A DNA stretch of 64,000 bases, taken from contig NW_026943819.1 in assembly GCF_035594765.1 (NCBI RefSeq), positions 14,930,703 through 14,994,702 on the forward strand. Reading direction: 5' to 3'. Positions within the stretch are counted from its first letter, which is position 1; each line of letters begins with the position of its first letter. A program made the position numbers and the translations under genes. Source of the stretch: Anolis carolinensis (lineage: Eukaryota). Positions 19,601 to 56,724 of the stretch are shown in pieces. Below the pieces are notes generated by a model. It had not been told where the DNA came from. It searched no databases and worked only from the letters and a program-made list of their open reading frames with translations.

Positions 19601-22600
19601 ATCTTGGCATATTACCAGAAACCTGAGAAGCTAGGGCATATGCTATCCTTGAATCGTCTGTATATCAGTGGCTAAGACATGGGAATAACTATAAGAAATA
19701 ATGCAAAAGAGCACACAGCTGCTAGTTTTGCACAAACACCACTTCCAGTTTTAACACCTGGCAAACTAGGGCTATTTTTTTATCTTCAAAACTTGTTTTA
19801 TGCCTAATGGTCATTGGAAAAACCAAATAGTTGTGGCCATCACAGCTTTGATGGCGATCAATGTTTTCTGTTGATTATATGCCATTTTATATTCCATAGT
19901 AGTTCAAGGGAATTATTCATAATGGCATGTGACTATAATAAAAATCTCAGATGGGCTCATGTGACCACAAGATAATTTGATACCTCTGGGGAATAGATGA
20001 ATTTGAGGCCTAGAAGAGGGATCATGCAGCCTCTGGAATGGCCTTTTAAGTGCCCTTTAATTCTTCATGCAGTTCTCTTTAAAGTATATAAAGATATACG
20101 GGGAAAATGAGCGGGTGACAACAATGTAAGTGTGCTTCCATGTCAGATGCATCCTAGAATAATTGTTATCATGAAGTAAGATTAATCTTGGGCAGCAGAC
20201 GGCTTGTCGGAATAGGCAGCCAATTGCTCAGTGTTGTATTTCCATTGCCAGAGAACAAGGAAAGCTAATAACGGGTTTTTCTGCAAATAGGTAATTTGGC
20301 TGGTTCCTCGTGCTATGTGGGGAGAGAGGCAAGAATGACCAAAAACCTTGCACTGTTTGAAATTAATTTATTGTTTATGAAATGAATGGTACATGTGAGG
20401 ATGAAATCAAGTTTCTGAGGCAAATATCAAATATGTCAGACTTATTGTTGTAGTGATTCTTATCACTCTAAAGAGCATTTAACTCTGCAGTGTGTTAACT
20501 ATTTACAGTTACTATTTCATTCATCACTAGGCATCTTCTTCTGTTCCTTTGGAAGTCAAGCACTTTGAGTTTGGAGCTTGGAGGACACCATTTGCGCCTC
20601 CACTTGGGGCTTGGGACAGCCGTTGATGTTTTTAAAGAAAACAAAGCATTCTGAAACTGACTTTGTACAATGGACAGAATGATGTCTTATTAACCATTGT
20701 CAAGAAACCAGTCTAGAAACAGGTGAGCGTCTAGAAAATCTGGGGTGCATCATTTCTACCCATTCTCTCCGTTGCATTTTAAAGTCCTTACTCTTCTTAT
20801 TCATGTCATGTTCTCAGTGCATTTTAACTGCATTGGAATTGTCAGCCTTTGATTCTTTATAGAAAGAGGAGAATGGGAATAGAAATAGTGAGTCCCTTGA
20901 AAGAATTGTGTATTAAATAAATGTAATAAAAACAAGTGCCATGACGTACATATATACAAGAAGACATATTTAAAATAATCAGTTTAATGTATAGTTAATA
21001 AATACTACAATGATAATTTTAACAACAACAATCCAGATACAAAGAAAAGTATCTTATAAAAATGAATTTTAAAACATAACTGGAAGTCTTGTCCCATTTC
21101 TAAATTAGGAATAATTCACTTTAGGCAAGAACTGTATATCTTTCCGCTGCAGTCCCCAAATACAATTTTCGCACAGCTGCCATAGATGACAGGCTGCTTC
21201 TACTCACAATTTCCCTTATTTTTGTGGAGGTAAACATGTACAGCTACAGAATGCTGTCACTTTGTATCAGAGAATCGAAAAAATGGGCTATTTTTAGAAG
21301 CTCACTTCAGCATAGGAGCTTTGCAAGGTACCCTGATGCTGCACAAAAAGCAATAGAAGGGGTATTGCCTCATTTCTTCTTAGCTGAGTCTGATAACAAC
21401 AAACATGGAAATCTCTGACTCATGATTGCATATCCCCACAAGGTTATTTAATTAAATCCATTGAAGAATTTAGTAATTAACTTCCTCTTCCATTAAAAAA
21501 CAACATAAAAGTTTTTTCAAGAACACATTTAATTATTTTATTGGTTTCATATTTTTATTAGGATGTTATTTTGTATGGTGTGTTTTAATGTTTTAGTTAT
21601 TGTATTTAAGGTTAGTTATCTTGATCATTAATTCGACTAGAAAGCCAGGATAGGCATACAGTGAATTAAAGATATTTACCCAAAGTAAAATAAGCATATT
21701 GAAACTGTTTATGAATCTGACATTCACCTGGAATGTTTTGGAAATTCATATATTTCATACAAAAAACAAAGGGAAAAGGCAGGGTCTTTACTGCAACAAT
21801 GCAGTGTTATTACTTGAGTTATGGGAACATTATCCCATACAGGAAAGTAGGACTCATGCTTCTGCTCTCACTTTGGCCAAAGCAGCCATCTCCCCTTCCC
21901 TGCAAAACACTAGGTCACCTATATATAAAACTGCTGCCTGTGCTGAAAAAACGCCTAAATCAGCAAAGCAGAAAAGAGAAAAAAAATCTAAAGATGATCA
22001 AACTGCTAGAACAGCAGCTAAAGAGCAACAAAGTCAAAGGGAGGAACAAAAGGTGCAACATACAATAAGCACAATTAATGAGCTATTCTTCCATCTGAGT
22101 TCAGCGAAATACTATTTGTACTTAATTCTGGTGTTTGCACTTCTTGTAAAAATCATCCAGTTCAAAGAAGATAATATGGATTATCTGCTTTGATAATCTG
22201 GATTATATGACAGTGTAGAAGGGGCCTAAATTACTGGTAAGAGCCAAGAAATCTTGATTTGAAGAAGTGGTTCCCGGATATTGTTGAATTTCAGTTTCCA
22301 ATAGTATACTTGCTTTGCTTTCAAAAATGGATCCCTCTGCTTCCATCAGAAGTAGCAATACACAAACACTTCTAAAACCTGGTCTGAAAAACCACCCAAG
22401 TTAAGAACAAGACAGGTTCTATAGGTTTGTTCTTAGGCTGAATTTGTTTGTAAGTTGGAACAAATATGCATATACATTTATAAATACATACATACATGCA
22501 TGCATATAAAAGCTCTGGATGACATAGGGAAAGGTTAATACCTCTCTGGTGTTCACTTTGCTGTCTGTGTCCCAGTTCAGAAGATTTCACCTCACTTTCT

Positions 22601-39839: not shown

Positions 39840-40325
39840 ATTTATTTAAGGTATTTATATTCCGCCTTTCTCACCCCGAAGGGGACTCAAGGCGGATCAC
39901 AATGTACACATACATGGCAAACATTCAATGCCATATGAACATAGAGACAGAGACAAAAACAGACACAGAGGCAATTTAACCTTCTCCAGCTTCCAGCTTC
40001 CTGAGGGTATGCTTGATTCCGGCCACAGGGGGAGCAGCTGCATCATTATCCACTGTGATGTCGAGTCCTCAGATACCTCCTCATTCCAAACACTGCTGGA
40101 TGATTTTTATGGTGTCGTAAATTAAATTAGCCTCCCCACATAAGTGATACCTAAATTTCCTACTTGATAGATGCAACTATCTTTCGGGTTGCTTAGGTCA
40201 ACAACGAGCAGGGCTATTTTTTATTGTAATGGTTGGGTGCTCACTCTGACAGGGGTTGGCCTCGAACTCATGACCTCTTGGTCATAGTGATTTATTGCAG
40301 CTGGCTACTAACCAGCCTGCACCAC
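39840..40325 (-). mobile_element. tRNA-headed SINE (Sauria-related), minus strand
   Basis: B box gagttcgagg on minus strand near 40260-40269; (TTTA)n tail near 39835; similar copy 56800-57180. Confidence 0.6.
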
Positions 40326-40364
40326 AGGCTGGTTATCTAAGTATCTATCAATCTAGAACTCAAA

Positions 40365-40533
40365 TTCTTCTTCGTGGTGCTTCTGTGGAAATCGCACATA
40401 TGGGATTTTCCCTGCGCCTGCGCAGTGTTCCGGAACCTTCTAGAATCTCTAAATGAAACATTTTGGCGGCAAGCCCCGCCCACTCTCCCCAATAGAGTAT
40501 ATATAGCCCGGTGGGCGGGGCTGGCCCCAGTTC
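40365..40533 (+). repeat. DIRS left inverted terminal repeat
   Basis: Inner ~140 bp is the exact reverse complement of 46122-46263. Confidence 0.95.
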
Positions 40534-40746
40534 TTTTTCTCCGCCGCTCAGCAGCAGTTAGGAACCTTGAGTATCTCAAACTTTATTTTTGGCCGACTGG
40601 TTTGACCTGGACTGTTTTTTGGACACCCGTTGCCTCTCTCCTGCCTATTTGATCTCGGAAAGTACCTCGGAAAAGATCTGATTTGCCTCTCTCCGCCCTA
40701 CAGACCTAGGAAAGGACTTGACTACTCTTAATTAAGGCCAGTATTA

Positions 40747-42912
40747 ATGGCGTCCTTCTTTAAAAAATGTGATGCGTGTGGGGGCACACTCCCTGAGGCG
40801 GATGGCCACGCCAAATGCCTCCTCTGCCTGGGGGAGAGCCATAACCCTCAATCCTGCCAAGTCTGCAGAGGTTTTACCCCCCAAGCGAGGAAAAATAGAG
40901 AATCGAGGCTTAAAGCCTTGCTATATGAACAGGCGCTAGCCCCAAATGCCCCAGGGGCCCAGGAGTCCCGGCCAAGCCCATCGGCCGCTGGAGGTGATGA
41001 GGCCGTTGAGCCCTCGTGTCCACCACCTCGAGAGGCCTTGCAGAGTATCACCCAAGAGGCGCCCGGATTAGAAGAGCCCACCACTGTGGCACAGCCATCT
41101 AAGGGCCTGAAGGAAGGCAAAAAGAAAACCAAGAAAACAAAACATCTCAATAAGGCCCCACGGGCCAAGCCGCTGCCTCAGTGCCAATCGAGGGCAAGCC
41201 TCTCTCCAAGATCGGACAACCCCCCTCCCTTGACTCCGATCGAACCTCAGGCCTCGCAAGCGCTTTCCTTATCAGGAATTATCCCTGCCCAGCCGGTGCC
41301 GTCACCACCGAGCGTACTGCAGGAGGCGCGGAACCGAGAAAGAAGGGGCAGAAGGTCTAGCTCCAGCTCCAGCTTGAGCAGCCCCCCTCCCTCTCCTAAG
41401 CGCCCCAGACGGGGTCGATCAACCCGCCGCCGGCGAGGAGCTGCCTCAGCCAGCTCTGCTGACTCCTCATCCCCACCTCGTGAGGGCTCTACTTACCGGT
41501 ATGGCAGGGCCAGCTCCTCAGCCCCTTGTCTTCCATACCCTTTTTATGGACAAGGGCTGCCTCCATACCCATTTTTTCCTCCTGGATTCGACCCTTGGGA
41601 GCCCTATAGGCAGTTTGCCGTTGCCTCGGCACCGGCGCGAAGCCACGCCTCCATGGCGTCGGGCCCGACAGCGCCATTGGAAGACAGCCGCCATGGCCAC
41701 GCCCCCACAAAGCCAGCGCCATTGGAGGAGGCCAGCCAACGCCACACCCCAGCGATGCCTATGGTGCGCATGCGCCCAGGGACTGAAACGCAGGCTGAAA
41801 TGGCATCCACCTCCGGAGCTTCCCTTCCTAGGACGCCTGTCCCTCCGCAGCAGGAAGAAGCCCCTAGTGGAGTTGAAGATAAGTCACTGGAAGCCCAGGC
41901 AGTAGTTTTAGACCCCCATGATGTTACTGACCCTGGGTCTGGGGAAGATTTTAAGACTTTCTCAGCGCTTCTAGTTAGACTCTCGCGGGCCCTCAATCTG
42001 CCGGCTCCAAAGCCTGTTAAAGTTGTTGAGGATCCAGTTTACCCCTCTTCCAAGCAGCATGGGCCTCTAACTACATCCCTGCCGTCACTGCCATATCTCA
42101 TAGAACTGGTAAAGAATGAAGGAGTCTCCCCAGCCTCCCTTCCTGCAACCCCCAGGAGGGCGGAGTTTTTATACAAGATTGAGCTTTCAGGGGCCCAGTG
42201 GCTAGCAGAGCAACCCAGACTGAATTCTAAGGTAGTAGACGCTACCCAACCTAAGGCAGTGCAGAGGTCTCAACCAACTCCAACCGATAAAGAAGGAAAA
42301 AAGCTAGAAAGTATGGGCAAAAAGTTTTATTCATCAGCATGCCTATTCGCTCGGATGGCACACTTCACAGCCTATACAGGTGCTTATCAATCCTACCTGT
42401 GGGAGAAGATGGCTCCATACATTGATCTACTCCCAATGCAGGACCAGGCGCTGGCAAAGGCGTTCCAGCAAGAGGCGTGTCTTTTGTCGGAAGTACAGAA
42501 GGAGCTGGCTAAGAATGTGGCTGATGCCTCAGGCAAACTCCTAGCTGGGGCCATATCCCTACGACGGCATGCCTGGCTCCGGGCCGCAAACCTATCCCCA
42601 TCGGCTAAGTCTGTCATCGAGGACCTTCCTCTAGATGAGGCAGGTATTTTTAACCCGGACACAGATGCCCAAATTAAAGACACACACGAGGTGACACAGG
42701 CAGCTCACAAGTACGGTGTTCAGCAGACCTACTACTATCAAAGACGTCGATGGGGACAGTATTATCGAAGTAGAAGATCCTCATCTCCAGCGTTTAGAGG
42801 GCGGCAGAGGCCTTCCTTTCGTCCATCGGGATCCAGACGTCCTTCTTTTCCCTTCAAGTCTCAGCACCGAAGTGCAGGAAAGCAGGGTGAGAAGCAGAGG
42901 CGCCGGTTCTAG
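40747..42912 (+). CDS. DIRS ORF1 Gag-like protein (N-terminal Cys/His finger, LAP2alpha-like helical C-terminal region)
   Basis: 721 aa; CxxC-x9-HxxCxxC-x4-H-x4-CxxC at the N-terminus; DKEGKKLESMGKK...RRHAWLR...IEDLPLD motif typical of vertebrate DIRS1 ORF1. Confidence 0.88.
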   Translation: MASFFKKCDACGGTLPEADGHAKCLLCLGESHNPQSCQVCRGFTPQARKNRESRLKALLYEQALAPNAPGAQESRPSPSAAGGDEAVEPSCPPPREALQSITQEAPGLEEPTTVAQPSKGLKEGKKKTKKTKHLNKAPRAKPLPQCQSRASLSPRSDNPPPLTPIEPQASQALSLSGIIPAQPVPSPPSVLQEARNRERRGRRSSSSSSLSSPPPSPKRPRRGRSTRRRRGAASASSADSSSPPREGSTYRYGRASSSAPCLPYPFYGQGLPPYPFFPPGFDPWEPYRQFAVASAPARSHASMASGPTAPLEDSRHGHAPTKPAPLEEASQRHTPAMPMVRMRPGTETQAEMASTSGASLPRTPVPPQQEEAPSGVEDKSLEAQAVVLDPHDVTDPGSGEDFKTFSALLVRLSRALNLPAPKPVKVVEDPVYPSSKQHGPLTTSLPSLPYLIELVKNEGVSPASLPATPRRAEFLYKIELSGAQWLAEQPRLNSKVVDATQPKAVQRSQPTPTDKEGKKLESMGKKFYSSACLFARMAHFTAYTGAYQSYLWEKMAPYIDLLPMQDQALAKAFQQEACLLSEVQKELAKNVADASGKLLAGAISLRRHAWLRAANLSPSAKSVIEDLPLDEAGIFNPDTDAQIKDTHEVTQAAHKYGVQQTYYYQRRRWGQYYRSRRSSSPAFRGRQRPSFRPSGSRRPSFPFKSQHRSAGKQGEKQRRRF

Positions 42913-44932
42913 CTCACAGCCTAGAACCCACTCCCGGTTGCCATCCAGTTCAAGTTTAAGTTCTCCAAGTTTATGTGGTTCTGTTTCTAGTTACGGGCAA
43001 ATGTTATTGCCTCGACATGTTGGAAAGCAGAAAGGGCACCCCACGTTCCTAAATAGACTGGGCCCGTTTATAGGTGCGTGGAGACAGATAACGTCGGATG
43101 CATGGGTCCTCAATATTATTGAGAGAGGTTATGCGATTGAATTTGAGTCCCTACCCCGCACTGGTACCCTCCGTCCTACCAGACCCTCACAGTGCCTCCG
43201 AGATGAGGTAACTACGCTGTTTGAGAAAGGAGCAATTTCCAAGTTTTCGCTCGGGAGGGCTCACAAGTGTTTTTTCTCAAGATATTTTCTTATAAAGAAG
43301 AAAGGTGGAGGCCTACGCCCCATCTTAGACCTGAGAGCAGTCAACAGACACATCAAAGCTCGGAGGTTTAGAATGGTCACCCTCGCCACCATTCTCCCCT
43401 TCCTCCGCAAGGGAGCATGGTTTGCAACGGTAGACCTTCGTGACGCCTACTTCCATATATCGGTGAGGCGCTCCCATCGCAGGTTCTTGAGTTTCCTTAT
43501 TGGGGATGTGATTTACTCCTTTAACGTCCTCCCATTTGGTTTAGCCACAGCGCCACGGGTTTTTACCAAATGCATGTCAGTCGTCGCAGCCGCCCTGAGG
43601 CAGAGGGGCATCACGATCTTCCCGTACATCGACGACTGGTTGCTAGTCTCTGACTCAAGACCCCAACTTGAATTTGATGTGTCCTTCACCTTGTCTTTCT
43701 TGCAGGGACTTGGCTTGATCATCAACGAGGAAAAGTCCCATTTACATCCGTCACAAACGATCCAGTTCATAGGAGCTCTTATGGACTCTATCGCCGAAAG
43801 GGCTTACTTACCAGAGGAACGGTTCCGTTCCATCCGTGCTTCTATTTCACAGCTCCGTATGTCTGGACAGGCGTCGGCGTGGCACGTCCAGTCTATCTTA
43901 GGCCATATGGCCTCGACAACATCTCTAGTAGACCTGGCCAGACTGAGGATGAGACCACTCCAATTCTGGTTTCTAAAAGTTTTCAACCCGTTGTTCGACA
44001 GCCAACGGACACTTCTGAGACCACCAGCCAGCGTCCTGGAATCCCTGGAGTGGTGGCTGAAGCGTCACAACCTACTAAAGGGCCTGCCATTCCACCCCCC
44101 GACACCATCACTCGAATTGACGACAGACGCCTCTCAAGACGGATGGGGGGCCCATCTCAACGGCATGACAATAAACGGTCGTTGGTCAGCTCAACACCGC
44201 ACCTTGCACATCAACCTGTTGGAACTACTGGCAGTGGAGAGAGCTCTGCATGCATTCGATCGCCTGCTCCGGGGCAACACTGTCAGATTGGTAACAGACA
44301 ACACTACAGTAAAGTTCTATCTGAACAAGCAGGGCGGGACGCATTCCAGGCTCCTGCTACAAATTTCCATGAGAATCTGGGACTGGTGTGTGGATCGACG
44401 GATAAACCTCCAAGCCGTCCACCTTCCAGGCAAAGACAACGCCTTAGCGGATGCCCTAAGCCGAACGACCACCTCCAACCACGAATGGCAGCTAAACAAC
44501 AAGGAGTTTCGACTCCTGGCGCGCCATTGGGGGTGGCCGGCAATAGACCTGTTTGCATCGCCGGAAAACACTCACTGCCCCAACTTCTGTGCCCGTCTTC
44601 GCCCGAATGCGACCCCAGGGTGCCTAGGAGATGCGTTTCGTTTTGTTTGGACAGGAGATCTGCTATACGCATTCCCACCCCTTCCTCTGATCGGCAGGGT
44701 GGTCACGAAGATTCTACGCGACGACTCCAACTGCATCCTAGTGACTCCGTGGTGGCCTCGCCAACCGTGGTTTGCGCCACTATGGAGGGCAGCCAAGGGC
44801 AGCTTCATCAGGTTCGACAACTCTCCAGACCTGCTCACGCTTCATCAGGGCAGAGTCCGCCACCCAGAATTGGCAACTCTACGACTTACAGCTTGGAGGA
44901 TCGAACCCAACAAGGACTCTCCTCCCCGGTGA
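42716..44932 (+). CDS. DIRS ORF2: reverse transcriptase - RNase H - adenine methyltransferase-like domain
   Basis: GGLRPILDLR, VDLRDAYFH, LPFGLATAP, YIDD (43625-43636); RNase H TTDAS/INLLEL/TDN/ADALSR; MT-like IDLFAS (44543) and YAFPP (44666); first ATG 43001. Confidence 0.95.
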   Translation: MFSRPTTIKDVDGDSIIEVEDPHLQRLEGGRGLPFVHRDPDVLLFPSSLSTEVQESRVRSRGAGSSSQPRTHSRLPSSSSLSSPSLCGSVSSYGQMLLPRHVGKQKGHPTFLNRLGPFIGAWRQITSDAWVLNIIERGYAIEFESLPRTGTLRPTRPSQCLRDEVTTLFEKGAISKFSLGRAHKCFFSRYFLIKKKGGGLRPILDLRAVNRHIKARRFRMVTLATILPFLRKGAWFATVDLRDAYFHISVRRSHRRFLSFLIGDVIYSFNVLPFGLATAPRVFTKCMSVVAAALRQRGITIFPYIDDWLLVSDSRPQLEFDVSFTLSFLQGLGLIINEEKSHLHPSQTIQFIGALMDSIAERAYLPEERFRSIRASISQLRMSGQASAWHVQSILGHMASTTSLVDLARLRMRPLQFWFLKVFNPLFDSQRTLLRPPASVLESLEWWLKRHNLLKGLPFHPPTPSLELTTDASQDGWGAHLNGMTINGRWSAQHRTLHINLLELLAVERALHAFDRLLRGNTVRLVTDNTTVKFYLNKQGGTHSRLLLQISMRIWDWCVDRRINLQAVHLPGKDNALADALSRTTTSNHEWQLNNKEFRLLARHWGWPAIDLFASPENTHCPNFCARLRPNATPGCLGDAFRFVWTGDLLYAFPPLPLIGRVVTKILRDDSNCILVTPWWPRQPWFAPLWRAAKGSFIRFDNSPDLLTLHQGRVRHPELATLRLTAWRIEPNKDSPPR

Positions 44933-45930
44933 AGGCCATTCTTCGGGCAGCCCAAAAGTCTTCCACGAAGCAATCGTACAGATACAAGTGGTCTAGGTTT
45001 TGTAAGTTTGCAGAGGCAAGAGGCCTAGACCCCGTCTCGGCCCCAACGTCAGAACTCCTAGACTTCTTATTACACCTATCCACCTTGGGCCTCTCGCTTG
45101 CCTCCTTGAAATGCTACCTGGCGGCCATCTCCTGGTATCGGAGGGGATTCGACGGTCAGTCGTGCTTTCAGGATCCCTTAGTCAAGCTCTTCTTTAAAGG
45201 TTTCAAAAACTTGCACCCCCCGGTGACCCCACCCGCACCAGCGTGGAGCCTGGAGTTGGTACTATCTCAGTTGTCCAAACCCCCATTTGAACCCATGGCC
45301 TCGTGTGATATTTCGCACCTCTCCTGGAAAACGGCGTTCTTAGTGGCGGTCACATCAGCAAGAAGGGTGTCTGAACTTTGCGCCCTCAGGGCGGACCCGC
45401 CTTACTTGAGATTTCATAAGGATAAAGTGGTCCTGAGAACTGACGTCACTTTCTTACCCAAAGTCGTTTCTAGATTCCACATGAGCCAGGATCTAACTCT
45501 GCCAGCATTCTTCCAGAACCCCTCATCGCCCCTGGAGGTGGCATTGCATTCCTTGGACGTGAGGAGGGCCTTAGCATTTTATACCCAAAGAACTTCGGGC
45601 CACAGGAAGTCACCCAGGTTATTTTTAAAATACCGAGCGGATGCTCTGGGGACCCCAGTCTCCTCTCAGCGCTTGGCATCCTGGATAGTGTCGCTGATCC
45701 GATTAGCGTATAAACTAGCAGGCCAAGATCCTCCACAGCGGATAGTCGCCCATTCCACGAGGGCGTTGGCTACGTCTCAGGCTTTTCTTAAAGGAGTTCC
45801 GTTGGAGGATATTTGCAAGGCGGCAACATGGTCTTCTTCATCCACTTTCGCCACGCACTACAAGCTGGACATCCTGGCGAAGAGAGACGCAGCGTTCGGA
45901 AGGGCCGTCCTCTTCTCATGCGTGGCATGA
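43879..45930 (+). CDS. DIRS ORF3 tyrosine recombinase (with long N-terminal frame overlapping ORF2)
   Basis: SARRVSEL (Arg), HSTR (45751-45762), ATW...FATHY (Tyr 45859-45861); recognisable domain starts near 44900; true start codon uncertain. Confidence 0.93.
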   Translation: MARPVYLRPYGLDNISSRPGQTEDETTPILVSKSFQPVVRQPTDTSETTSQRPGIPGVVAEASQPTKGPAIPPPDTITRIDDRRLSRRMGGPSQRHDNKRSLVSSTPHLAHQPVGTTGSGESSACIRSPAPGQHCQIGNRQHYSKVLSEQAGRDAFQAPATNFHENLGLVCGSTDKPPSRPPSRQRQRLSGCPKPNDHLQPRMAAKQQGVSTPGAPLGVAGNRPVCIAGKHSLPQLLCPSSPECDPRVPRRCVSFCLDRRSAIRIPTPSSDRQGGHEDSTRRLQLHPSDSVVASPTVVCATMEGSQGQLHQVRQLSRPAHASSGQSPPPRIGNSTTYSLEDRTQQGLSSPVKAILRAAQKSSTKQSYRYKWSRFCKFAEARGLDPVSAPTSELLDFLLHLSTLGLSLASLKCYLAAISWYRRGFDGQSCFQDPLVKLFFKGFKNLHPPVTPPAPAWSLELVLSQLSKPPFEPMASCDISHLSWKTAFLVAVTSARRVSELCALRADPPYLRFHKDKVVLRTDVTFLPKVVSRFHMSQDLTLPAFFQNPSSPLEVALHSLDVRRALAFYTQRTSGHRKSPRLFLKYRADALGTPVSSQRLASWIVSLIRLAYKLAGQDPPQRIVAHSTRALATSQAFLKGVPLEDICKAATWSSSSTFATHYKLDILAKRDAAFGRAVLFSCVA

Positions 45931-45962
45931 CCCACCGCCATTGGTGAGTAGCTTGTCAGTCT

Positions 45963-46061
45963 CCCATATGTGCGATTTCCACAGAAGCACCACGAAGAAG
46001 AAGATATAGTTGCTTACCTGTAACTGTGTTTCTTCGAGTGGTGTTCTGTGGAATTCGCACA
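45963..46061 (+). repeat. DIRS internal complementary region (ICR)
   Basis: First half is the reverse complement of 40365-40404; second half is the reverse complement of 46257-46315. Confidence 0.95.
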
Positions 46062-46121
46062 ACCCGCCCATCCTCCCCGCGGTACTCATGCCACAGTGCT
46101 CAGCTGCTTCTTCGCGGCTGG

Positions 46122-46315
46122 GAACTGGGGCCAGCCCCGCCCACCGGGCTATATATACTCTATTGGGGAGAGTGGGCGGGGCTTGCCGCCAAAATGTTTC
46201 ATTTAGAGATTCTAGAAGGTTCCGGAACACTGCGCAGGCGCAGGGAAAATCCCATATGTGCGAATTCCACAGAACACCACTCGAAGAAACACAGTTACAG
46301 GTAAGCAACTATATC
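46122..46315 (-). repeat. DIRS right inverted terminal repeat plus right extension
   Basis: Inverted copy of the left ITR plus ~27-nt extension ending caactatatc. Confidence 0.95.
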
Positions 46316-47430
46316 GTCTGTCTGTACTGCAAAGGCTGTTGCTAGTGAAGTAATACATGCCAAGAGGAAGGCCCGTCAAGCCAACCCTGACTGGGACCGC
46401 CTTCCACCTGGAAACCGATGTCCTCAATGCGGGAGAACATGCAGATCAAGAATAGGTCTCTTCAGCCACCTAAGAACCCACCCCCAAGACCCCACAGATG
46501 GAAGACAATTGTCCTCGAACTACGAGGCACCGCCTAAGAGAGAATACGAAGGCATTGTCCTTCCTATTTAAGAGTCCTTCCAGACAGGCCCTATATTCCA
46601 GGATCTGATCCCAGGTTTTCTGTTTATCCCAGATTATCTGGCAGTGGGGACTCATATATTTAATCCAGTTTAAAGCAGAAAATCTGGGTCAGATCCTGGG
46701 ATATAGGGCTTGTCTGGAAGGGTCCTGAGTTTTCTCTTCCCCACATCAAAAATTTCCTTCAGTCCCCTGGTTCGTAACATTGCATTAAATGAGACTTGAG
46801 CATTTAGACATACAGCAGAGGCAGCCAAAGTGATTGAGGGAAGGCCGTCTCTGGGTCCTTGTGATGGAATCTAATGGAGAAGGCAACTGGCTTCCGAATC
46901 CCAAGTCCTCTGACCCAGTTCTGCCGCTCATTTGCATGCTGCAATATGATTGGATTAAAAAGCCAGCCGCAGACAGGACTGAACCACGGAATGAATATTT
47001 TTTTTTCCTTCTGCAAATAAATATGGAATGAATTAATGGTCTGCAGCTCCCATCGTCTCAACCCTGGATAGAATTGATAGAAGCCGTAGTCCAATATTGA
47101 GAAGACTTCATCTTCTGCCTCATGGGCAAACCTGCCTAATGCTTAAATGCAGTAGACATAGTGTCACAATTGTTATGCTCCCTGAGCTCAAGCAAGCCAA
47201 ATATAGCCACTAACTATCAACTGTGACTCAGATGTCTTATCATAGTGGTTAAGCACCTTTATTTACTTAGTCACCTTTATGTATTCTCTCTCTGTTTCTC
47301 TCTCTCTCTCTCTCTCTCTTTAATTTCTTTTTAAAAAGTTTTCCAAGTGTAGTAATTGAGTTTTGTGATTTCATCGTGGACCAGTCTTGTACGAGAAGAG
47401 AGTGAGCTACTGTTTCTATAAACATTTTTA

Positions 47431-50178: not shown

Positions 50179-51291
50179 TCTGCCACTTCTGTGACGGTTC
50201 ATTTGGGTTTTGATGATTCCGTAGCCCACTTGTTGATGGATGTCCAGAATCAGCAGCATCCACCGCGGTCCTTTTTATCCTGGGCGACGACCGAGCCAGT
50301 ATAGACTTCGTTTTGGTTTGATTCTCCATAATGCTAATGGGTTAGGTGCTCTTGGTTCCACTCCTCAGCTGAGGCCTCTCTGGCCTGGTTGGACCTGCCG
50401 GTAGTTACACTACCGCCAGCACAGCCCTCAGCGTCCTCGGAATGGTCAAGCCCCCCCACCACGTCAAGGTGGCACCTGTGGGGGAGTTCCTTGACAAAAT
50501 TGAAGGAAAAGCTGATAAGGAGAAGACCTGGCTCTGGCTCATGAATGGGACCCTGAAGAAGGAGACAGAAGACCTGATCCTTGCAGCCCAGGAGCAAGCC
50601 ATCAGAACAAAGGCAATTAAGGCCAAGATCGAAAAATCAGCTGATGACCCAAAATGCAGACTGTGCAAGGAAACCGACGAAACTATTGATCATCCCCTCA
50701 GCTGCTGTAAGAAAATTGCACAGACAAACTACAAACAGAGGCACAACTATGTGGCCCAAATGATTCATTGGAACTTATGCCTCAAGTACCACCTCCCAGC
50801 AGCAAAGAACTGGTGGGATCACAAACCTGCAAAAGTATTGGAAAATGAACATGCAAAGATACTGTGGGACTTCTGAATCCAGACTGACAAAGTTCTGGAA
50901 CACAACAAACCAGACATCACAGTTGTGGAAAAGAAAAAGGTTTGGATCATTGATGTCGCAATCCCAGGTGACAGTCGCATTGATGAAAAACAACAGGAAA
51001 AACTCAGCCGCTATCAGGACCTCAAGATTGACCTGCAAAGACTCTGGCAGAAACCAGTGCAGGTGGTCTCGGTGGTGATCGGCACACTGGGTGCCATGCC
51101 AAAAGATCTCAGCTGGCATTTGGAAACAATAGACATTGACAAAATTACGATCTGCCAACTGCAAAAGGCCACCCTGCTGGGATCTGCGCGCATCATCCGA
51201 AAATACATCACACAGTCCTAGACACTTGGGAAGTGTTCGACTTGTGATTTTGTGATATGAAATCCAGTATATCTATCTTGTTTGCTGTGTC

Positions 51292-54830: not shown

Positions 54831-54913
54831 GTGTGAGCCTTTGGGTGGTTCAGGGCCAAGGTTGTCTGTCTCTGCCTGTTGGGGTTCCCACCGTCTTCCT
54901 CTCTACTAGAAAA

Positions 54914-56724
54914 ATGCCAACCCACCGGCTTGTGATTGTGAGGCATGGAGAGAGCACCTGGAACCAGGAGAACCGTTTCTGTGGCTGGTTTGATGCCGAG
55001 CTGAGCGAGAAAGGGCAGGAGGAAGCCAAGCGCGGGGCCCAGGCTGTCAAGGATGCTGGCTACGAGTTCGACATCTGCTACACATCCGTGCTCAAAAGGG
55101 CCATCCGCACTCTGTGGTACATCATGGATGGCATTGACCAGATGTGGCTGCCCGTGGTGCGCACCTGGCGCCTCAACGAGCGCCACTATGGGGGCCTGAC
55201 CGGACTCAACAAGGCCGAGACGGCAGCCAAGCACGGGGAAGAACAGGTGAAGATCTGGAGGCGTTCCTATGACATCCCACCGCCCCCCATGGATGAAAAC
55301 CACCCTTACTATCAAATCATCAGCAAGGTCAGTGCACAACCTGTATATGCTTTGCAACCAAACCTGGCTCAGTCTCAGTTAAGATTCATTTGCCACCAAT
55401 CCTCCAAGGACTGGCAAAAGGCAAAACATTTTGGGATGGTCCTATTCCCAACAATGGATTTTTCAGCTCTTGTTATCTCCATCAGTGGTACAGGTATAAT
55501 TGCTGAACTAAATGCATATGCTCAGACCAGGAGACTGCTTTCAGAAGCAAAATGAGCACACCTTCTTCTTTATATGTAGTAGATTTGTGCACCCATTGAT
55601 CTGTCCTGCTCCCTCTCAACTTTCTTGATTTTGGCAGCATTGAATCATTCTTTATTGTTGGTATTGTTAAATCACCAGATGTAAGAAACCCGTACTGATC
55701 TTCTGTCAAGCATTATAAAATCAAACTGTGGTTTCTGACTTATTTTCTGACTACACTGACTTTCCAGCAACCATGTTAATTTGTCTGAACTAGGAATTCT
55801 GTCAGTTTTGCTTTCCCCAATAGAAATTTGACTTCGTACATTGAAGCCCTATAATTATCTGCCCAACCCATGACCCAGAAACACTCAGCATGAGAGATAG
55901 GTAATTTTTATCTTCCGGACTACATAGCTTTGGCTAACCCATGGCACTAATTCATTTGTTCAATGTAAAAATAAAGTCTATCCATCTGTAATACAGTCTT
56001 TTCTGTTTTCTGATTCTGTATACTATGTATGGAGCCTCAAGCGATGCAGTGGGTAAAACCGCTGAGCTGCTGAACTTGCTGACGGAAAGTTTGGCGGTTC
56101 AAATCCGGGGAATGGGGTGATCTCCTGCTGTTATCCCCAGTTTCTGCCAGCCTAGCAGTTCAAAAACATGCAAATGTGAGTAGATCAATAGGTATCGCTC
56201 AAGCGGGAAGGTAACAGTACTCCATGCAGTCATGCTGGCCACATGACCTCGCAGGTGTCTCCGGACAATGCCAGCTCTTGAGCTTAGAAATTGAGATGAG
56301 TACCAATCCCCAGAGTCAGACACTACTAGATTTAATGCCAGGGGAAAACGGTTACCTTTCCCTATACTAAGTACGTATATTTGTTACATGCAATAATATT
56401 ATTATACACAATTCATATGCTTTTCATTAGCCAACATTAGCTACTGTGATTTATAATGTGGAGAATGGAAAGCAACAACTGTGTTGCACCTGAGAACTAA
56501 TGACACCAAATGATAACAAATGGAATCTGCTTTCTTATAAAGCTGTTGGTTTTTACATCCCTTCAGTTTCCCAAGATTATAAAGAGGATTCTTCTTAACC
56601 TGAGAAGCACTCATCCTGCTTCTATTGTAGATATTATTGCCATGTTTTCCCATGCCAGATTGAAACTGGGAAAGCATGATCACTTCTCTGATTCACAATA
56701 TATATTTGTTCTACGATCAGTACC

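Follow-up and report, generated by a model that had tools for sequence, protein, structure and literature searches.

The window, i.e., the whole 64-kb stretch of Anolis carolinensis DNA that was analyzed, contains an element of 5951 bp between positions 40365 and 46315. It very probably represents a full-length, autonomous DIRS1-like tyrosine-recombinase retrotransposon that belongs to a young, probably low-copy family, was inserted recently and has not decayed. The features of the element are compiled in Table 1. Its three ORFs are the three longest of the window and, as had been described in the initial annotation, all of them are free of stops. Features of the DIRS1 group that were found are RT and RNase H, a Dam-like methyltransferase (MT) domain, a tyrosine recombinase (YR), terminal repeats (ITRs), the ICR together with the right extension (rE), and the lack of a target-site duplication. 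The earlier view of a complete system of RT plus recombinase was supported in this respect domain by domain.

Table 1. Features of the DIRS1-like element and their positions in the window.
Feature	Position	Strand	Remarks
Left terminus, divergent part of left ITR	40365..40391	+	27 nt; exact match is the left ICR, not the right ITR
Left ITR, conserved part	40392..40533	+	142 nt; 100% complementary to 46122-46263
ORF1	40747..42912	+	721 aa, ATG start; gag-position protein
ORF2	42716..44932	+	738 aa open frame, +1 relative to ORF1; first ATG 43001
RT domain	about 43292-43774	+	Pfam PF00078, E 1e-23; YIDD
ORF3	43879..45930	+	open frame of 683 aa, shifted by -1 against ORF2; recombinase from ATG 44782
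RNase H domain	about 44105-44350	+	Pfam PF17917, E 3.5e-7; acidic residues in TDAS / LE / TDN / ADALSR
Dam-like methyltransferase domain	about 44468-44905	+	predicted, alignment to relative
SAM-like core-binding domain, ORF3	about 44959-45129	+	
Catalytic domain, ORF3	about 45316-45861	+	R496 K528 H625 R628 W651 Y661
Left ICR	45962..46002	+	41 nt; reverse-complementary to 40365-40405 throughout (41/41)
Right ICR	46003..46061	+	59 nt; reverse-complementary to 46257-46315 throughout (59/59)
Right ITR, conserved part	46122..46263	+	142 nt; mirrored TATA/GC-box module, inward-pointing on minus strand
Right ITR, divergent part (26 nt), and rE (26 nt)	46264..46315	+	right tip

The element is surrounded by repeat-rich non-coding DNA. 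Its flanks are unique, the window contains no N, and the sequences adjoining the element (left, ...AACTCAAA; right, GTCTGTCT...) carry no repeat that would indicate a target-site duplication. The 3' boundary was placed at 46315; a right boundary 3 nt further on is equally valid according to the trinucleotide-junction convention (Piednoel 2011). Pfam analysis of ten flank ORFs located up to about 6 kb from the element yielded only a LINE zf-RVT fragment and placed no host exon beside the insertion. A search of the entire 64-kb window against Rfam returned zero families at gathering score. A scan for bacterial promoters and terminators stayed at chance level, the underlying models being irrelevant to a vertebrate host.

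ORF1 takes the gag position. It encodes a protein with a Cys-rich N-terminus and a long middle part rich in S, P and R, for which no Pfam match was obtained, even at E 10. Over its C-terminal half (about aa 389-657) the protein looks like clusters of LAP2alpha and DIRS ORF1 proteins (feature score 0.95, structure TM 0.70), a resemblance that serves as a lead but is no alignment; only 11-22% of the members of these look-alike clusters carry PF11560.

ORF2 is an open frame without an ATG at its start, which corrects the initial annotation. The RT and RNase H motifs could be aligned residue for residue with a relative. Among the 924 homologs the named ones derive from reptile, amphibian and fish genomes. 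Behind the RNase H a Dam-like methyltransferase domain is predicted to be present: residues of about 585-730 are colinear with the C-terminal region of the relative that matches PF05869 (Dam) with 36.4 bits, above the cut-off. The domain of this copy itself gave only a sub-threshold Pfam match (PCIF1_WW, 21 bits).

Within ORF3 all six catalytic residues listed in Table 1 are present; they are invariant in an alignment of nine sequences and invariant or at least 90% conserved in an alignment of 25 sequences. The YIDD of the RT, the acidic residues of RNase H and the R...HxxR...W...Y of the recombinase, all of which had been noted before, were confirmed here by Pfam and alignments. For the recombinase an AF2 model with a pLDDT of 81 was obtained, whose best PDB matches are Cre/Tre (E 1.8e-10, TM 0.65/0.73), and the fold is predicted to be Cre-like. 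Families of DDE integrases (rve) or aspartic proteases (RVP) were found by Pfam in none of the ORFs. The first 322 codons of ORF3 overlap the coding region of RNase H and MT and contain 0 stops, compared to 9.8 +/- 2.5 in synonymous shuffles (0/5000). This upstream extension has no Pfam match; predicted proteins of other squamate DIRS copies possess N-terminal extensions that can be aligned with it. A single reading frame for gag and YR was considered as well and was rejected; ORF1 and ORF3 share the same frame but 14 stops lie between them. Other squamates, too, apparently keep the 322-codon overlap stretch open in their DIRS copies.

At the termini, the inner about 140 bp of the ITRs had been described as identical, which agrees with the two conserved parts in Table 1. 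When the pair is stretched to 153 nt one mismatch occurs, and the outer 26-27 nt are complementary only in part. Left and right ICR together (45962-46061) form the exact reverse complement of the end-to-end junction, that is of the right end joined to the left end, and the match of the right ICR takes in the 26-nt rE. The stem formed by the right ICR and the right tip has a folding z of -16.9 relative to shuffles. Direct repeats within the element are confined to two pairs, one of 45 nt in tandem inside ORF1 and one of 25 nt, which is an echo of ICR and ITR. The left ITR harbors a module of GC box, CCAAT (40489), TATA (40498) and a further GC box, from which an RNA start near the inner edge of the left ITR is predicted. 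Canonical AATAAA or ATTAAA signals are present neither at the element's 3' end nor shortly past it. The rE contains CAG/GTAAGC, a 5' splice-site look-alike.

Several observations concern the age of the insertion. The CpG o/e amounts to 0.66 in the element vs. 0.27-0.30 in the flanks and the remaining window, in line with the earlier statement that CpGs are retained in comparison with CpG-poor flanks. The 242 paired nucleotides of ITRs and ICR show 0 mismatches, and three intact ORFs would be expected with a probability of at most 5% beyond about 0.3-0.7% neutral divergence. Intactness of the ORFs and mismatch-free repeat pairs bound the neutral decay of this copy to roughly 0.3-0.7%. The internal 5.4 kb were recovered with 99.7-99.8% identity and different flanks in contigs from four public runs (four studies, same organism), where 7 of 3807 nt and 4 of 1572 nt deviate; these contigs therefore represent sister copies at other loci. 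Several unlike flanks adjoin both element ends in the contigs, the termini are far more abundant there than the body, and about 0.9 of the element's 31-mers were found in 20 runs from six studies. The classification as a recent copy was borne out by the mismatch-free ITRs and ICR, the intact ORFs, the CpG retention and the sister contigs, which differ at 0.2-0.3% of sites. No joint of right end to left end turned up in the contigs; short contigs could not display one in any case, because the ICR mimics this junction over 100 nt. The single joint detected connects 46039 to 46276 in one contig with a 25-nt side and is uninterpretable.

The closest annotated relatives are from A. carolinensis (YR 81%, gag 76%), followed by A. 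sagrei (71%). For A. carolinensis, 775 DIRS copies in 42 families with the same terminal layout are described (Piednoel 2011, PMC3266345), of which AcDIRS1 and AcDIRS2 stem from the same host lineage and have 5938 and 5997 bp compared to the 5951 bp found here. Divergent ITR, conserved ITR and rE measure 27/142/26 nt with an ICR of 41 + 59 nt, similar to 26/140/26 and 40 + 58 nt in these relatives; with the present element included, the ranges are 26-27 nt, 136-142 nt and 26-28 nt, with an ICR of about 40 + about 59 nt. Common to all of them are also the domain order gag - RT/RH/MT - YR, the motifs DLRDAY and ADALSR and the accordance of end and start trinucleotide at two of three positions; the long ORF overlap is shared with AcDIRS2. 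In contrast, YIDD, LTTDAS, AFPP and HSTR of our element are replaced by YLDD, ITTDxS, LFPP and RSTR in AcDIRS1/2, and it starts with TTC instead of CTT or TTT. Membership in AcDIRS1 or AcDIRS2 was rejected based on motif strings and start trinucleotide. Judged by the motif strings that set it apart, the element is a sister family and another one of the 42 reported.

DIRS-1 of Dictyostelium discoideum (Cappello 1985; Malicki et al., 2020, PMC7192593) likewise possesses ITRs and an ICR complementary to both termini, RT/RH/MT and YR in overlapping ORFs, and a left-ITR promoter whose mirror image lies in the right ITR. Its ITRs are longer (about 316 nt vs. 169 nt here) and its YR overlaps the front of pol, whereas the YR follows pol in the element from the vertebrate host. 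The essential role of the ICR and the single-stranded cDNA intermediate are experimentally established for DIRS-1 and are predicted for the present element. With Cre/Tre and phage-type tyrosine recombinases the element shares the predicted two-domain fold and the R-K-H-R-W-Y active site; however, identity is only about 15%, the coding sequence belongs to a retroelement, and for the recombination sites there is only a 3-nt junction model. Ngaro, PAT, VIPER and Cryptons also use a tyrosine recombinase in place of a DDE integrase. Ngaro, PAT and VIPER carry split direct repeats, whereas our element has ITRs and an ICR and no long direct repeats; Ngaro and VIPER are furthermore devoid of an MT domain and Cryptons of an RT. 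A Ngaro/PAT-like class was rejected, as the arrangement A1-B1 ... A2-B2 of split direct repeats was not found.

The element is not novel, and young and polymorphic DIRS elements of anoles are already well documented: in green anoles 6,873 polymorphic Dirs insertions were reported (Bourgeois 2020, PMC7561263). The rarity implied by the initial annotation was overstated in this regard, since recently mobile DIRS of A. carolinensis had been published (PMC3266345, PMC7561263). The element itself is real. The existing picture of the green anole, the textbook case among amniotes for an abundance of young DIRS families and for segregating insertions in the thousands, is unchanged. The value of this copy lies mainly in its use as a clean reference specimen, in which the whole DIRS1 machinery of an amniote element is preserved undamaged in a single copy, with an exact geometry of ITRs and ICR. 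It could aid the study of cDNA completion and insertion of YR retroelements, which have so far been tested only in Dictyostelium.

A replication cycle can be proposed, in which the steps of transcription, cDNA synthesis, end joining and insertion are deduced from the anatomy of the element and from Dictyostelium DIRS-1, and the translation step reflects coding capacity only. Pol II would start at the TATA/CCAAT/GC-box module of the left ITR, near its inner edge, and read through past the right terminus. The gag/LAP2alpha-like ORF1, ORF2 with RT, RNase H and MT, and the YR of ORF3 would be translated from overlapping frames, either by frameshifts (+1 from ORF1 to ORF2, -1 from ORF2 to ORF3) or from internal starts at 43001 and 44782. 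The RT would then synthesize a single-stranded cDNA, for which the right tip, folded back on the right ICR over 59 bp, possibly serves as the primer. In DIRS-1 the ICR is essential and the cDNA single-stranded (PMC7192593). By acting as a bridge between both cDNA ends the ICR could allow the termini to be restored and joined, and the body of the left ITR would be copied from that of the right ITR, which would explain the identity of the ITRs. Finally, the Cre-like recombinase may insert the joined form where the target shows a short match to the element (element TTC, site GTC), and no target-site duplication would arise. The circular intermediate that had been assumed earlier is in accordance with the classical model; the experiments in Dictyostelium, the only ones available, revealed mostly linear single-stranded cDNA (PMC7192593).

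The reading as a young, complete and possibly active element is supported, with the possible activity being an inference. A more far-reaching interpretation is that this copy or near-identical sisters are at present a retrotransposition-competent source of a small, very young family and that the 322-codon stretch genuinely extends the recombinase at its N-terminus or is part of a frameshift fusion; we consider this doubtful and put it forward only tentatively. If competent for retrotransposition, the element could provide the first amniote DIRS that is amenable to experiments. Slightly more weight, though still short of a probable explanation, is given to a copy that is young but already dead or silenced, with an intact structure disabled by private amino acid changes or by host silencing via DNA methylation or piRNAs. 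About 17 sites distinguish this copy from the majority contigs. The change is non-synonymous in one or more frames at about eight of these, and the copy may already be slightly impaired. Six of the differences are losses of CpG (to TpG or CpA) on this copy, which methylation would lead one to expect. Moreover, RNAi keeps DIRS-1 under tight control in Dictyostelium (PMC7192593) and Dirs insertions of anoles are under purifying selection (PMC7561263). No RNA evidence was obtained among the public runs, none of which is recorded as RNA ('RNA?' flags are guesses), and nothing specific on the expression of anole DIRS was found in the literature. However, every catalytic residue that could be checked is intact and the changes are located mainly in the fast-evolving ORF1 (five non-synonymous differences, compared to two in ORF2 and two in ORF3, one of the latter being synonymous in ORF2). 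Each change may have gone in either direction, as the contigs are a majority path rather than an ancestor.

Two further explanations for the open frames are much less probable. A domesticated, host-retained set of DIRS-derived genes, kept open by host selection, has a precedent in DIRS1 ORF1, which became the LAP2alpha domain in mammals (PMC4495291), and the protein collection includes the ORF1 of this copy among its called proteins. We nevertheless consider domestication extremely improbable: the non-coding parts that serve transposition only (ITRs, ICR, rE) are perfect, near-identical copies exist at other loci, CpGs are kept throughout the element including the UTRs, which points to youth, and the best match among annotated A. 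sagrei proteins (71%) is no close ortholog. An assembly artefact, in which reads of sister copies were collapsed or polished into a consensus-like intact copy, is invited by a multi-copy family with more than 99.7% identity and by termini that are far commoner than the body. It is scarcely more credible than domestication, because about ten variants of this copy are absent from the majority contigs of all four runs, contrary to what a consensus would show. The unique flanks and the window free of N likewise speak against an artefact, and the sequence is part of a chromosome-scale contig of 30.9 Mb.

The unit at 40365-46315 comprises 5951 bp with a G+C content of 54% compared with 42% in the background, and lies in a window containing neither N nor soft-masking. 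A scan of the whole 64-kb window located its three longest ORFs, all of them open, inside this element. The initial annotation of an intact DIRS1 element with three long stop-free ORFs was confirmed. ORF2 is offset by +1 relative to ORF1 and ORF3 by -1 relative to ORF2; ORF1 and ORF3 are separated by 14 stops despite their common frame.

Coordinates and lengths of the reading frames and terminal repeats of the element
Feature	Position	Length	Basis
ORF1 (gag position, possibly LAP2alpha-like)	40747-42912	721 aa	ORF scan
ORF2 (RT/RNase H/MT)	42716-44932	738 aa	ORF scan
ORF3 (YR)	43879-45930	683 aa	ORF scan
Inverted pair	40381-40533 with 46122-46274	153 nt, 99%	repeat search
Inverted pair	40365-40405 with 45962-46002	41 nt, 100%	repeat search
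Inverted pair	45999-46061 with 46257-46319	63 nt, 98%	repeat search
Divergent left tip	40365-40391	27 nt	global alignment of both ends
ITR inner part, identical in both	40392-40533 and 46122-46263	142 nt	global alignment
Divergent right tip		26 nt	global alignment
Right extension	ends 46315	26 nt	global alignment

ORF2 matches the Pfam families RVT_1 (E 1e-23) and RT_RNaseH (E 3.5e-7). Its alignment with the related protein P0092 covers 629 residues, including the YIDD/YLDD motif and the acidic RNase H positions noted before, and extends across the C-terminal domain; in P0092 this domain matches Pfam Dam above threshold. The recombinase is encoded by ORF3 from an ATG at 44782 and showed weak Pfam matches to Phage_integrase and a SAM-like core-binding domain. 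In an alignment of 25 recombinases from squamate, turtle, amphibian and coelacanth relatives the catalytic residues R, K, H-x-x-R, W and Y are invariant or at least 90% conserved, and all of them are present in the element, as initially described for all but K. The best solved-structure matches of the AlphaFold2 model (pLDDT 81.3, pTM 0.68) were Cre/Tre (E 1.8e-10, TM 0.65/0.73). For ORF1 no Pfam match was obtained; the atlas clusters that its C-terminal half most resembles (score 0.95, structure TM 0.70) include members of the LAP2alpha family, for which an origin from ORF1 of DIRS1-like elements has been described (PMC4495291). The low-complexity middle of ORF1 contains a 45-nt tandem pair (41669-41758, 73% alike). 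A 6-nt insertion behind 41076 in the contig of one public run suggests that gag length varies among copies.

Ahead of the recombinase core the ORF3 frame runs for 322 codons without a stop (43879-44781), across the RNase H and methyltransferase regions. Synonymous-codon shuffles of ORF2 gave 9.8 +/- 2.5 stops in this frame and none of the 5000 trials was free of stops; where this frame lies over the initial 387 ORF2 codons, it contains 15. N-terminal extensions aligning with this stretch occur in predicted DIRS proteins of other squamate copies (A. carolinensis, A. sagrei, Sceloporus, Pogona, Phrynocephalus, and Eublepharis). The putative extension itself has no Pfam match. Half of all annotated elements of the DIRS1-like type, AcDIRS2 among them, show long overlaps of their ORFs (PMC3266345).

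The inner part of the ITRs, initially described as about 140 identical bp, was delimited by global alignment of both ends, and the outer 4 nt of the 63-nt pair are a chance 3/4 extension into the flank. On the plus strand the internal complementary region (ICR) consists of the left tip in reverse complement and, directly after it, the right tip in reverse complement; it thus corresponds, reverse-complemented, to the junction of right end and left end (41/41 and 59/59 matches). As RNA, the 3' region would form a perfect 59-bp stem between right ICR and right tip (-204 kcal/mol, z = -16.9). Comparison of the flanks revealed no target-site duplication common to both. The element starts with TTC and is directly followed by GTC, which would fit the trinucleotide-junction model at two of three positions, like AcDIRS1/2. 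A look-alike of the consensus 5' splice site, CAG/GTAAGC, lies in the right extension (46296-46305), with its complement in the right ICR (46012-46023).

Several measures support the earlier interpretation as a recent element. CpG o/e is 0.66 over the element, UTRs included, compared with 0.27-0.30 around it, in agreement with the CpG retention noted initially. None of the 242 paired ITR/ICR nucleotides is mismatched, and per-lineage change is therefore at most about 0.6% at 95%. The stop-creating share of substitutions is about 3.8% in 5090 coding sites; with indels set at 5-15% of the substitution rate, the probability that all three ORFs stay intact is at most 5% beyond 0.3-0.7% neutral divergence.

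Twenty public runs, generated in six studies of a single organism, contained 0.85-0.92 of the sampled 31-mers of the element; none of these runs is catalogued as RNA. Contigs of four runs (four studies) were aligned to the element, and those of 3807, 3234, 2782, 2406, 1612, and 1572 nt covered its interior with 0.2-0.3% differences. About ten differences were common to all four runs and are therefore private to the window copy. Among 17 examined sites 15 were transitions, CpG losses fell six times on the window copy and three times on the contig side, and about eight altered the encoded protein in one frame or more. A 31-mer share of about 0.9 is what about 17 private variants would leave, so that no run demonstrably contains this very copy; its own flanks were in none of the listed contigs of the four runs. 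Contigs that continue past both ends into unlike sequence show other insertion sites. The summed contig depth, which is not a copy number, was 25-40 over the coding body vs. 100-1300 over ICR and termini (45940-46339 and 40365-40539) in each of the four runs, and most of the 39-185 aligned contigs fall in the termini. Qualitatively, termini at least 95% alike are far commoner than the element body; other families may share these ends, or non-autonomous derivatives may account for the excess.

The type of element represented here was known before, as were its host and its recent mobility. A. carolinensis harbors 775 DIRS1-like copies in 42 families, among them AcDIRS1 (5938 bp; terminal parts 26/140/26 nt; ICR 40+58 nt) and AcDIRS2 (5997 bp; 26/136/28 nt; 39+60 nt) (Piednoel et al., 2011, PMC3266345), and 6,873 polymorphic Dirs insertions with a mean frequency of 0.15 were found in green anoles (Bourgeois et al., 2020, PMC7561263). 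The terminal parts of the element (27/142/26) and its ICR (41+59) are nearly the same as in both named families. Its motif strings differ, which makes it a sister family. Among annotated relatives, predicted proteins of A. carolinensis come nearest (YR 81%; gag 76%, over half of its length), followed by A. sagrei (71%, 67%, and 63%) and then other iguanians; ORF1 itself is already among the recorded proteins. The best matches of ORF2 reach only 48-57%, including Pogona and A. sagrei, which says little since TE proteins are rarely annotated.

Established for the element are its coding capacity and repeat geometry. At 40476-40520 lies a compact module of GC box, CCAAT, TATA and GC box, from which RNA would start close to the inner border of the left ITR; the mirrored module of the right ITR may direct an inward antisense RNA, as known for Dictyostelium DIRS-1. 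Neither AATAAA nor ATTAAA occurs near the 3' end (45931-46700); such hexamers are confined to the internal positions 44170 and 42673. The ICR of DIRS-1 is indispensable at a stage later than first-strand synthesis, and the cDNA of that element is single-stranded and for the most part linear; the postulated substrate of integration is still a double-stranded circle, but this form was never amplified (PMC7192593). Among the contigs of the four runs no joint of right end to left end was present.

The insertion site is repeat-rich: only repeat debris and no recognizable host exon was detected in the roughly 6 kb to each side. The left neighbor is a tRNA-like, SINE-looking stretch (40200-40330), the right one a LINE-like coding remnant (46390-46450), and 4 kb downstream there is a zf-RVT fragment (about 50442-50876). 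Two further plus-strand ORFs of the window, one with a histidine-phosphatase (phosphoglycerate-mutase-type) domain (54833-55555, E 4e-27) and one with a weak FAM60A match (21699-22193, E 3e-5), may represent host exons or retrocopies.
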